A stretch of DNA of 64,000 bases from Prasinococcaceae sp. CCMP 1430. Taxonomy: Eukaryota > Plantae > Prasinodermophyta. The stretch covers positions 333,911 through 397,910 of the forward strand of contig RQSC01000027.1 of assembly GCA_013416795.1 (NCBI GenBank). The letters are read 5' to 3'. How positions within the stretch are numbered: the stretch's first letter is position 1; every line of letters begins with the position of its first letter. The position numbers and the translations under genes are program-made. Positions 59,511 through 64,000 of this stretch are shown here, piece by piece. Below the pieces are notes generated by a model. The model made no database searches and had not been told where the DNA came from. It saw only the letters and a program-made list of their open reading frames with translations.

Positions 59511-60203
59511 CGATGCCGCGCGCGGCCGCGGGGCGGCGTGCGTGCGCGAGCGCCCTGGAGGGCCCGCGAGCGGGCGCGCGGGGTGAGGTGTGGGGGCCGC
59601 TGGCGACGCGGCGCGCGCGCGCTGTGGCTTGGCCCAGGCCATCTCCATGTCTGTCTCCGCGGTCAATGCCATTGACATTGACCGCTCACATTCCGAAAGT
59701 ACGATACGTGTAGGTCCCTGGCTAGAGCCGCTGGTGTTCGCGGGTGTTAAGATCGGCGCGCGCGCGGCGCTCGTGTTAAAATGCGGGCCCCACACCAAAA
59801 AAAAATTCAAACGGGCGCGGCGCGAGGATCGCCAAGGGAGCGCACCCGCAGCGCCGCGGAGTTCCGCGCATTTTTGGCATGCAATTCCGGGAAGCGCGCG
59901 CGCGCGACGCCGAATGCCTTTCGCTCACCATGGCCGGCGGCGGCCAATGCTGCAGGGGACGTCGCGCCTCTGCGGACTCGGCGCCACAGCGCGCGCCGCT
60001 GGCGCAGCACGCGCTGCTGCTGGCGCGGAGCAGCGGCCGGGAGGCTAGTCTGGCGCCGAGCGTTGTCGACGCGGGGCCGGGCGCCCTCCGCGCGCCGGGT
60101 GGGTGCCAGGCGGCCATTGCGCGCGGCTGACAGCGCGCAGGAATCGGCTGGAGCAAGCCAGGCTTAGCCAGCAGCTGAAAAGTGAGGACTTGAGGTGCGC
60201 GCG

Positions 60204-61607
60204 ATGTCTGCGAGGGGATCTAAGGGGGGGCGACGCGGGCGACGGCGCGTCGTGGCGAACACCGCCGTGGCGCTCACGTTCGTCGTCGCTGCCTGCGTTA
60301 CGCCAGCGGTGCGGTGCGCAGGGGAAGAGGTCGCGAGCGCCTGGTATGAACGGGCGCTCGCCGCAGGCATCAACGCTCTCACATCAGGGGGGAGGACGCC
60401 CCCAGCGAACGCCAGTTTGAACGCCGTTGAAGACGTCGACGAAGAAGTGGATGCCGATGACGCGCAGGTGGACACCGACGCTGTGCTAGATGAGGTCGGC
60501 AGCAGCCTCGTGCCGGGGCAGCGGGTATCGTTCGGCATCGCTGGCCCTCGCGTCATAGGCGCCGCTGCGGCGCATGAGTTCATGTTCAAGTTTCGACCAC
60601 GGCCGTGGCCGCCCCAGGAAGGCGACACCCCGAAGACGCCGCGCATTATGGCGCAGAAACCATCGACAAGACTTGGCAAGAAGGCGGTGCCCGCAATTGC
60701 CGGCATGTACAATACGGGCACGAACGCCGCGTTCGTGCAGCTCAACAAAAACTGCCAGCTGGCTCCCTGGCACTGGCAGATGGCGTCTGGAAAGCACGTG
60801 GCGCCCACCTGGACGCTCCCAGGGGTCGCTCCCGACGACTTTAAGGCCGAAGCGATGGCGTACTGGCGCCGCGTGAACTTTGGTGGCAAGGAAGTGAACC
60901 TGCCCGTCGTCATCGTGCGGCACCCGCTCATCTGGCTGCTGAAGAGCATGTGTCGCAAGCACTACGGGGCCACTCCGCTAGCCCACGATCCCAGCTTCGT
61001 GTTGCGCAACACGAGCGTCTGTGGAAACAGCATATACCGCAACCCGCTGCGAAGGGTTTTTGACCGAAAACAGGACGAGGCCTGCAAGGCCGACGACGCC
61101 CTCGACAGGCGTAGCAGAATGCTTGCGCGGCGGGAAGCGTTGGAGGGGAAGGGAAGCCGCTGCTTCTTTGGCCTCAATTACAAGGACCCCATCGACCTGT
61201 GGAATGATTGGTACAGCGCCTACACAGACTTGTATGACTCGGTCGATTTCCCCGTTGTCTTTATCCGGCATGAAGACCTTCTGTTGCACCCGTACGAGGT
61301 CACAGCGAAGCTGTGCTGGGCTTATCAGAACGTGTCTCTCGCTCCCGAGGAGTTCAAGCCAAACGAGCGGAACGTCAAGGTGAAGGTAGACGGCACAAAT
61401 GCGCAAGGACACAGGCCGATAACGGGCAAGGACGGCAAACCCGTGGCCGCCTCCTGGTACGCCCACCAAGTGCTTGATCCGTCCTACGTCTTCTCCGACC
61501 AATCGGGCGAGCGACTGTCGGAGGACGAGCTGAGCTACTTGGCCAGCCGCGTCAACCAGACGCTCATGGAGTTCTTTGGCTACTCGATGGCCAGGGAGGA
61601 GCGGTGA
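60204..61607 (+). CDS. Golgi-type sulfotransferase-like protein with N-terminal signal anchor
   Basis: 5'-PSB-like GMYNTGTN, 3'-PB-like VIVRHPLIWLLKSM, LWNDWY, FIRHEDLL. Confidence 0.7.
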   Translation: MSARGSKGGRRGRRRVVANTAVALTFVVAACVTPAVRCAGEEVASAWYERALAAGINALTSGGRTPPANASLNAVEDVDEEVDADDAQVDTDAVLDEVGSSLVPGQRVSFGIAGPRVIGAAAAHEFMFKFRPRPWPPQEGDTPKTPRIMAQKPSTRLGKKAVPAIAGMYNTGTNAAFVQLNKNCQLAPWHWQMASGKHVAPTWTLPGVAPDDFKAEAMAYWRRVNFGGKEVNLPVVIVRHPLIWLLKSMCRKHYGATPLAHDPSFVLRNTSVCGNSIYRNPLRRVFDRKQDEACKADDALDRRSRMLARREALEGKGSRCFFGLNYKDPIDLWNDWYSAYTDLYDSVDFPVVFIRHEDLLLHPYEVTAKLCWAYQNVSLAPEEFKPNERNVKVKVDGTNAQGHRPITGKDGKPVAASWYAHQVLDPSYVFSDQSGERLSEDELSYLASRVNQTLMEFFGYSMAREER

Positions 61608-61669
61608 GCGGTAGCTGGGCACAGGGGGCATAGGTGCAGGAGTAACAACGGTCTCGATTATTTTCCACA

Positions 61670-64000
61670 TCAGCAAAAATACCACACCGTGTCGCCTTCC
61701 TTGCCCCCGAGCGTGGCCACATTTTTCTCCAACTCGCCCATGCCGCTGGTCTCCGCCGCCCGCCGCGTGCCGACGGCGATCACGCATGGAGCCCTCGCCA
61801 GAGGATCACCGGGGGCGACTACAGGCGCCGAGCGCGGGCCTTGCAGAGCGTGATTCTCGTACTGTGGAAGCACTCAAGGGCAGCGAGCCGGGGTTCACGT
61901 CAGCGCAAGCTGCCCGCAGCTGACTCTGCGCGTCGCGGGGCGCACACGAGGGCGAACAGGGCACGCTTCAGCGAGCAACCAATGAAAATGCACAAGACGC
62001 ACCGTGGTGCCAATTCGGTTGGGCGCGATGTCGACGAATGCCCGGACCCTCCCGCGTGCCTCCGGGGAGAGTGCACCGAAGAGCTGGCGCCCGTCACGTC
62101 CGTTGCCCCAGATGACGAAACCACCATCCTCACGCCATGCCGGGCGCGAAAGCACTCGCCGCTCAAGCGCCGCCGCGCGCACAGCGAAGAGGCGTTGGCG
62201 CGACGTGCGGCTACTCGTCTGTGAGGGCGTCCAGCGGTACAGAAGGAGTGGTGAGCTCGTATCACCCACGCGCACCAGCGCCACGTCGTCCGCATGGCTC
62301 GCATCCGCAGGGACAGCAACATCGCCCGAATGCCCGCCGTCGCGGGGTACTAAAGCCACCGCTCTTGCCCTGCTCGGAGCACCGTTCTCTCCGTCGAAGC
62401 TCCCCAGGTGCCTGAGGAACCACTCGAGGTCCTCCGCCAGCGATTCCTGCAGACCGTCCTCTATGAAAGGCCCCGTCGCATCGAAGGTGGTGCGCGACAT
62501 GAACCACGTGGGCATCTGCACGGTGGTCTCCCGAAACTGCTGTAGCAGCATCTGCTCGCCGCTCAGGGTGTTGGCCCAGCGGGAGTAGTGCTCGGTGGCG
62601 TCCAGTGGCATGCGCTGCCAAGCGCAGCCGAGCAGCGCGCGGGGATGTGCTCGCGCCGCTTGCTCCTGCGCCGCAATGCGGCCCGGCATCATCACGTCGT
62701 CTGCATCGAGGAAGCACAGCAGCGTGCCGCTAGCATTTTCCACACAGCGATTCTTCGCGAAGCCGCAGCCCCGATTGGCTCCGGCGGAAGTGGTCTCGCT
62801 GCCGCTAACGACAGTGCCGATGCCACGCGCGCGCAGGTGCTCCGCCCATCGCTCGAGGATCGCGCGTGAGTCATCCGTCGAGGCGTCGTCGTACGCCGAG
62901 AGCTCAATGGGGCCCTCATAAGTCTGCGTGAGCAGACTCATGAGGCACTCATCGAGCCACTGGCTCGCGTTGTGCACAGGCAGGATCACTGACACGAGCG
63001 GCAGAGTCGCATCGGCTGGAGGTCGCGCCGGCAGCTCGTCGGGCAGAGCACTGATGGCTCGCGCGAGCGCGCCGATCACCCGACGTTCCGCCTCAGCTCG
63101 GGCGCATAGTGGCGCCACATCTGTGCTCCGTGGCTGCACAGCCTGCATCACCATGCCGTCCGATGCGTGCGTGGCGCCCCCAGTACCCGTGACTGCCCCA
63201 CCTTCGTCAGCCACTGCGCCGGCGACTCCGGCGGATTCAAACAAAGGATGGCCATGCCGGTCGAACGCCTCTTCTGTGATGCGCACCATGCCATTGGCCA
63301 TCAGTCTGGGCATCTCGCCGAGATTCTTTGTACCGCTATGCACCGCCAGTGGATGCAAGATCGCGACGTCGCCTGCACACCCAACTATCTGCTCGATCCG
63401 CTGCTCACCAGCGCACCTCGAGCTACCATCGGCTGCGCGCGCGTATCGCAGCGAGCCATCGACGATGCCTCGCAGCGTACGCTCCTGCGCCCATACGGAG
63501 AGCTGGTCGTGTGCCACACCAGCAGGACCTTCCTCGCAGAGGCGTGCTGCCACCCACTCATGCGAACGGGCCACCACCGCGGTGCCTCCTTCACCGGGCG
63601 CCCAGTCGCTCAGCAGCAGCAGCAGCACCGCGCCCTGATAGCGATGCCCCGCGGACGTGCGCCGCGCCGAAGTATCAAAACCTGGTCCGATGTCAACGTG
63701 CCAGCCGCGATGCTCCACACGGCGACGATTCACCGCAGTCCAGCACGCCTCGGCGCTCGACTCTGGCGCACTCTTCCCGACTCCCCTCGCGTCCGCGCCG
63801 CCGCTGTCAGTGCGTGTGGCCACGGCGCCCGCGCTGGTTATCCCCCTCGCTCCGGCCGTCTGATGGTCGGCCGTTGCTGCTTCGGCCTCAGCCGCGTCCA
63901 GGGCAGTGAGATGGGCGGCCCTGAGCAGTATCTGTCTAGTGGTGCGCGTCGAGTGTCGCTGGAATGCAGAGGCGAGTTTGTTGGGAGCGTGCTGGCCGCC
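61670..64000 (-). CDS. B3GNTL1: PhyH-like 2OG-Fe(II) dioxygenase fused to a B3GNTL1/QTGAL-like GT2 glycosyltransferase; 5' end outside the window; intron 62002-61862
   Basis: WHVD, LLLLSD..PGEGGT.V...SH, GDVAILHPLAVHSG...R; VSVILPVHNA..WLDECL, G.GFAKN, LCFLDADDVMMPGRI, TEHYSRWAN, VQMPTWF, IWGNGRDGR; last exon ends EGDTVWYFC*. Confidence 0.88.

Follow-up and report, generated by a model that had tools for sequence, protein, structure and literature searches.

The minus strand at the far end of a 64,000-nucleotide stretch of DNA from Prasinococcaceae sp. CCMP 1430 (Prasinodermophyta; GenBank assembly GCA_013416795.1, contig RQSC01000027.1, positions 333,911 to 397,910), the whole of which is referred to here as the window, carries a single nuclear gene whose predicted product is a 974-residue enzyme of three modules, namely a PhyH-type 2-oxoglutarate (2OG)/Fe(II) dioxygenase, a Myb insert and a glycosyltransferase (GT) unit of the queuosine-tRNA galactosyltransferase (QTGAL, or B3GNTL1) type. 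The fusion is real and expressed, and is transcribed as one spliced unit. The reading favoured here, to which a probability of about 45% is assigned, is that the product glycosylates queuosine in tRNA and couples this transfer to an oxidation, a reading in which we infer the acceptor, the donor sugar and the coupling alike.

The reading frame is uninterrupted from the window edge (position 64000) to 62003, resumes after an intron and ends at 61670 (TGA stop codon at 61670-61672). Translation of 61895-64000 on the minus strand yields a frame still open where the window ends, with no stop codon between the PhyH and GT2 parts, as an earlier annotation of the window (the original prediction) had described. 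The start of the gene is located approximately 735 nucleotides past the window, with the codons of the first 245 residues lying past position 64000. The intron donor GTGCGT at 62002 follows a complete codon (phase 0), and the acceptor CACAG ends at 61862. The EukProt protein P0147 (974 residues), which shows no mismatch to exon 1 (residues 246-911) or exon 2 (residues 912-974), was used in its stored form as the full-length reference, with the two exons being treated separately and not joined into one model. The N-terminal 320 residues served as query in a word search that retrieved P0121 (976 residues, 98% identical), to whose cluster P0147 belongs. The entire gene, consisting of one long exon and a terminal intron, is present on the Tara metagenome scaffolds L001 and L002, and the last exon is homologous to the C-termini of animal QTGAL and of P0122, which ends with the same exon. 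The GC content of the window is 66%. The features of the gene within the window are given below, where A1 denotes an alignment with 23 relatives, A2 an alignment of algal, animal and haptophyte members of the QTGAL family, X1 a sequencing run described further on, and pLDDT the predicted local distance difference test score of a structural model.

63890-64000, minus strand: end of Myb repeat 2, residues 246-282 (P0147 mapped to the window; Pfam Myb_DNA-binding).
63251-63754, minus strand: predicted C-terminal half of the PhyH-type 2OG/Fe(II) dioxygenase, residues 328-495, with H346, D348, H466 and R477 (ligands from A1; PF05721).
63011-63250, minus strand: low-complexity linker between dioxygenase and glycosyltransferase, residues 496-575 (pLDDT below 50 for residues 503-540; variable in A1).
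62201-62995, minus strand: predicted GT2 catalytic domain of GT-A fold, residues 581-845, with DADD at 62696-62707 (PF00535, E 6e-19).
62003-62200, minus strand: first part of the basic QTGAL-family C-terminal domain, residues 846-911, with IWGNG (W312 and G315 invariant in A2).
61862-62002, minus strand: intron of 141 nucleotides, GTGCGT...CACAG, phase 0 (joint 61861/62003 present in the X1 transcriptome contig).
61670-61861, minus strand: last exon, residues 912-974, ending ...GDTVWYFC, plus stop codon (identical to the end of P0147).

Transcription across the fusion was assessed using run X1, whose organism label is shared with the DNA runs containing the window. A contig of 4481 nucleotides from this run aligns to 62003-64000 and 61600-61861, skipping exactly the 141 nucleotides of 61862-62002, which read CT..AC on the plus strand and thus GT..AG for the fusion gene; since the intron is missing from the contig, it is derived from spliced RNA. 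No break occurs in the contig from the end of the Myb insert to the last exon, with the PhyH half, the linker and the GT2 domain in between. Beyond the fusion gene it continues into the convergent neighbour gene (60195-61607), the 3' ends of the two having been merged without regard to strand, which leaves the continuity within the fusion gene unaffected. Seawater metatranscriptome contigs (X2, X4) were found at 62128-62435, 62436-62756 and 63073-63423, and the linker is covered by both the X1 contig and X2 pieces. The spliced last exon that had been predicted is hence present in a transcript, and a single transcript spans positions 62950-63300, for which a check had been proposed. Among the metagenome gene models P0121 and P0148-P0156, most read through the terminal intron (window 61895-62002), ending ...TTVRLVHFHWLL...QLALT, and they disagree on N-termini; the EukProt model P0147 alone agrees with the spliced transcript.

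The GT part of exon 1 (342 residues) aligns with B3GNTL1/queuosine-tRNA galactosyltransferases at 39-42% identity over 96-99% of the query (E 1e-55 to 1e-65), and in the same search the E values drop from approximately 1e-31 to 1e-21 at the point where generic bacterial GT2 sequences begin. Every family-invariant residue is retained in A2, including the motifs DxSxD (D53/S55/D57), DADD (D113/D115/D116), MPTW and ED, as well as the tryptophan and glycine of the C-terminal domain (residues 846-974 in full). The IWGNG tryptophan is W876, encoded at 62108-62110; in A2 numbering W312 and G315 are invariant across algae, animals and one bacterium, and a tail of the form ...EG..WYF is shared with the animal proteins, with which the alignment runs from end to end. 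Throughout algae, animals and the bacterial member, this C-terminal domain is basic (pI, the isoelectric point, 9-11) and the GT-A part is acidic, with a pI of 10.3 for the C-terminal domain of the fusion protein; considering that the pattern is common to all lineages, it fits a conserved polyanionic acceptor. The structural model of the GT unit (pLDDT 89) adopts a GT-A fold with Z scores of 20-21 to TarS, WrtF and SpsA. A search of PDB sequences for a solved QTGAL returned generic GT2 structures only, and NCBIfam contained no equivalog, all matches being far under their cutoffs.

Phylogenetic placement was based on 25 eukaryotic rows, with 20-21 bacterial full-length homologues and generic GT2 proteins as outgroups. 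The eukaryotic QTGAL proteins form one clade on a long stem, with a support of 100 in the Shimodaira-Hasegawa-like approximate likelihood ratio test (SH-aLRT), in agreement with a first tree. Within it the metazoan proteins are united with a support of 100, and a green-algal clade that includes the window protein (support 95) is positioned beside the metazoan clade, the window protein not being within the animal clade itself. The GT2 is thus placed inside, and not outside, the eukaryotic QTGAL clade and, as judged from its sequence, is a full-length QTGAL/B3GNTL1 homologue; the resemblance along the full length, C-terminal domain included, that had been claimed for it agrees with both the search and A2. 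The build shared with animal QTGAL comprises a GT-A GT2 domain with a DxD motif and a basic C-terminal IWGxG domain. In contrast, the animal proteins (approximately 350-400 residues, with Pfam matches to GT2 only) possess neither an oxygenase nor a Myb module, consistent with the earlier statement that the vertebrate enzyme lacks a dioxygenase domain. The algal clade furthermore has QFRETT where the animal proteins have FTSHGPT in the segment before MPTW, and an extra insert after the ED motif.

A genome scan also revealed a large bacterial family with the build of QTGAL, i.e. GT2 followed by a basic C-terminal WGxG domain (loci L004-L083), distributed over Acidobacteriota, Verrucomicrobiota, Bacteroidota, Gemmatimonadota, Chloroflexota, Desulfobacterota and other phyla. 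These genes are situated among housekeeping genes and outside glycan clusters. No neighbour was common across phyla in the 80 bacterial loci, with UvrA, UvrC, GyrA and an ABC ATPase each occurring in at most 11 of them, and the gene context gave no clue to function.

The oxygenase is divided by the insert, the order of modules derived from A1 and Pfam being PhyH N-terminal half, Myb pair, PhyH C-terminal half, linker, GT2 and C-terminal domain. In P0147 the PhyH N-terminal half extends over residues ~20-156, the Myb repeats over ~187-282 and the PhyH C-terminal half over ~328-495, such that of these three parts only the last and the end of Myb repeat 2 lie in the window, the remainder of the three being located beyond it. 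The original prediction of a PhyH-GT2 fusion stands, yet it overlooked two features, namely the inserted pair of Myb repeats and that portion of the PhyH domain which is encoded off-window. Its claim of intact ligands proved correct: H346 and D348 of WHVD (63692-63700), H466 of AVHSG (63338-63340) and the 2OG arginine R477 (63305-63307) are invariant in all 23 relatives. The profile PF05721 scores 19.1 bits on the window fragment (E 1.8e-3, under the cutoff of 22 bits) and 22.4 bits on full-length P0147, marginally over it, with relatives scoring 27-42 bits. An AlphaFold model of residues 1-569, with a core pLDDT above 90, matches dioxygenases of the PhyH clan (OkaE, PrhA, FtmOx1, AsqJ, SnoN, KanJ) with Z scores of 16-17 over 210-220 residues, in an alignment that spans model residues 15-495 and hence both PhyH halves. 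The dioxygenase is accordingly predicted to be complete, with its catalytic residues intact. It shares with the tailoring enzymes of this clan (OkaE, PrhA, FtmOx1, AsqJ, SnoN/SnoK, KanJ, AviO1/HygX) the double-stranded beta-helix, the HxD...H ligands and the 2OG arginine, and KanJ, SnoN/K, AviO1 and HygX act on the sugar parts of glycosides. These enzymes differ from the algal protein in that they belong to bacterial or fungal secondary metabolism, are 12-20% identical to it and are without a Myb insert or a fused GT. The structural neighbours give no substrate class, their Z scores being tied among unrelated tailoring enzymes, and an ESM Atlas look-up with the standalone PhyH proteins returned generic PhyH clusters only.

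On P0147 the Myb pair is recognised by PF00249 in two stretches (55.7 bits), and its profile matches the R2R3 structures 3osf and 1h88 (MYB21, c-Myb R2R3); the module is basic (pI 8-10.5). Considering that standalone relatives (e.g. P0131, P0137) have a short variable loop at this position, the pair represents an insertion into the oxygenase. It is thus an R2R3-like, putatively nucleic-acid-binding Myb pair, which is predicted to sit in the loop just before the HxD strand of the dioxygenase. The insert is missing in the fusion protein of Micromonas pusilla and reduced to a single repeat in P0132.

The PhyH-GT2 architecture is widespread in prasinophyte-grade algae and in marine metagenome clusters, a distribution that the original prediction did not mention. 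In an exhaustive profile search with the oxygenase, 120 representatives passed E ≤ 1e-30. PhyH-GT2 fusions account for at least nine of these (at the 50% identity level), and approximately 15 clusters at the 90% identity level combine PhyH with GT2, mostly together with Myb. Fusions are present in Micromonas pusilla CCMP1545 (XP_003056335.1, a truncated model, and an MMETSP transcript of 827 residues), Pycnococcus provasolii (GHP06576.1) and Pseudoscourfieldia marina (XRB16759.1), and one fusion has added ankyrin repeats. These sequences are already public under generic names, one record having been automatically named B3GNTL1-like protein. Searches of published papers did not recover a description of the dioxygenase-Myb-QTGAL architecture, a mention of algal homologues in the paper identifying QTGAL being possible. 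The PhyH subfamily also occurs in other builds among metagenomic proteins (P0218, P0138, P0244, P0145), comprising ankyrin repeats with Myb/PhyH and GT2 (1444 residues), leucine-rich repeats (LRR) with Myb and PhyH, PhyH with Pirin, and PhyH with a second 2OG-Fe(II) domain. ESM Atlas in addition lists a viral PhyH cluster.

The animal enzyme provides the model for a function. QTGAL uses UDP-Gal to galactosylate queuosine (Q) at position 34 of tRNA-Tyr on its homoallylic hydroxyl. The enzymes that make glycosylated queuosine were reportedly identified only in 2023; to our knowledge, this nucleoside has so far been described in animals, and Q-tRNA is the only known acceptor of the QTGAL family. 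By analogy, the algal GT unit would move a hexose from a nucleotide sugar to a queuosine hydroxyl at position 34 of cytosolic tRNA, and we consider the chance that it glycosylates Q34 slightly better than even. The fused oxygenase would then perform an oxidative step, a hydroxylation or something similar, either on that modified nucleoside or on the sugar it carries, a part of the proposal that is tentative and rather doubtful. The tRNA may be held by the Myb pair together with the basic C-terminal domain. Such an enzyme would follow a logic like that of ALKBH8, in which a nucleic-acid-binding domain, a dioxygenase and a transferase residing on one chain act in sequence on the wobble position 34 (U34). 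The likeness is one of logic only: ALKBH8 has an AlkB dioxygenase instead of PhyH, a methyltransferase instead of a glycosyltransferase and an RRM instead of Myb, there is no sequence relationship, and sequential action in the alga is only proposed.

A queuosine pathway has been reported for green algae. According to a review, Chlorella and Chlamydomonas need queuine from outside to form Q-tRNA (PMC4425180), and QTRT1, QTRT2 and QNG1 have been called ubiquitous in this group (PMC12301720). Among Diptera, galactosyl-queuosine (galQ) is absent where the QTGAL orthologue has been lost (PMC11705514).

Several observations weigh against a coupled queuosine enzyme. The GT unit is only about 40% identical to animal QTGAL, so its acceptor specificity may differ. 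Queuosine already possesses the hydroxyls used by QTGAL, making an oxygenase chemically unnecessary; DNA is the usual ligand of Myb pairs, and we know of no PhyH-type enzyme that acts on RNA. The oxygenase structures nearest to the model are all of small-molecule tailoring enzymes. Standalone PhyH relatives (340-440 residues) are numerous, and the fusions' part of the tree includes a standalone GT (the P0004 cluster), the 140-417 nucleotides available upstream of the standalone GT genes P0004 and P0458 being free of any PhyH remnant; strict coupling is weakened by this occurrence of both halves alone, which the original prediction did not note. A search for split PhyH/GT gene pairs in eukaryotic contigs found none, no QTGAL-like gene was found near standalone PhyH relatives, and a PhyH gene was present within 7 kb of a bacterial full-length homologue in none of the 80 loci. 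Two standalone PhyH genes (L084:8001-9455 and L085:4031-5227) are located on densely coding contigs in which ankyrin, PARP and AAA genes abound; these contigs look like giant-virus (Nucleocytoviricota) DNA and carry no QTGAL gene nearby.

These points bear on an account in which the two activities are uncoupled: the GT would glycosylate Q-tRNA as in animals, and the oxygenase would act on an unrelated small molecule or serve as a sensor of O2, 2OG or iron, or as a scaffold, the fusion having arisen from co-regulation or by chance in compact genomes. It agrees with the small-molecule enzymes found as nearest structures and with a PhyH subfamily that is widespread both standalone and in other fusions (Pirin, second 2OG domain). 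However, a fusion that arose by chance or serves regulation alone should erode or differ between lineages, whereas the PhyH-GT2 order and the junction are kept from Prasinodermophyta to Mamiellophyceae, and catalytic residues are invariant in both halves. We regard this account as having a minority chance of being correct.

An enzyme acting on DNA or chromatin, which we consider improbable, represents a further alternative. Here the Myb pair would target DNA, the oxygenase would hydroxylate a base or a residue of a chromatin protein, and the GT would glycosylate the new hydroxyl, following the hydroxylate-then-glycosylate logic of JBP/JGT in the synthesis of base J or of the lysyl hydroxylase LH3. 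The insert, being basic and matching DNA-binding R2R3 Myb structures, would suit such a role, as would the fact that queuosine does not need a new hydroxyl and that related builds carry ankyrin or LRR protein-interaction modules. Pairs of a hydroxyl-making dioxygenase and a GT are moreover established (JBP/JGT, PLOD3, Skp1 PhyA/Gnt1), and LH3/PLOD3, mimivirus L230, Skp1 PhyA/Gnt1 and JBP1/2 with JGT resemble the algal protein in pairing a 2OG dioxygenase with a GT-A glycosyltransferase, LH3/ColGalT1 being among the GT-A structural matches (Z 14). Unlike the situation for queuosine, which already has its hydroxyls, the oxygenase in these systems makes the hydroxyl that is glycosylated. Their oxygenases are of the P4H/LH or TET/JBP type, whereas the algal one is PhyH-type and neither TET/JBP-like nor a collagen-type hydroxylase, and the algal GT is of the QTGAL type and not GT25, GT60 or JGT. 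Against this alternative also stands the GT unit itself, a full-length member of the eukaryotic QTGAL clade with a basic C-terminal domain, in a family whose only acceptor known to us is Q-tRNA. Furthermore, DNA targeting is not essential to the fusion, since the Myb insert is absent in Micromonas pusilla and reduced to one repeat in P0132.

That the fusion is an annotation or assembly artefact, with two adjacent genes yielding separate proteins, is rejected as highly improbable: the X1 contig does merge transcripts at its 3' end and its RNA nature is labelled a guess, but the frame between the domains is free of stop codons, the same continuous frame recurs in metagenome scaffolds of independent origin and in species that are no more than 40-60% identical, the intron is absent from the contig, as expected for spliced RNA, and the Micromonas MMETSP transcript P0203 (827 residues, marked complete) contains both domains.

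The convergent neighbour of the fusion gene is a 470-residue open reading frame on the plus strand (60195-61607), with the two stop codons 63 nucleotides apart. It has no match in Pfam or NCBIfam and is kept beside the fusion gene on the Tara scaffolds L001 and L002.

If the favoured reading is correct, early-diverging green algae may make a new tRNA hypermodification, in which the fused PhyH domain oxidises glycosylated queuosine further, by hydroxylation, epimerisation or another tailoring reaction, a possibility that is unlikely on present evidence. An oxidised glycosylated queuosine would, if true, be without precedent in two respects, as no PhyH-type 2OG oxygenase working on RNA and no pathway to glycosylated queuosine outside animals are known to us so far. 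A QTGAL-clade enzyme as deep as Prasinodermophyta would shift the origin of Q glycosylation to early eukaryotes, and the bacterial family with the same two-domain build raises the question whether bacteria glycosylate Q. Culturable algae (Micromonas, Pycnococcus, Prasinoderma) would allow the function of glycosylated queuosine to be studied. The conservation of the fusion, its intact oxygenase and the Myb insert suggest that the enzyme either performs an additional chemical step not yet described or uses another acceptor, and new biochemistry would result in both cases.

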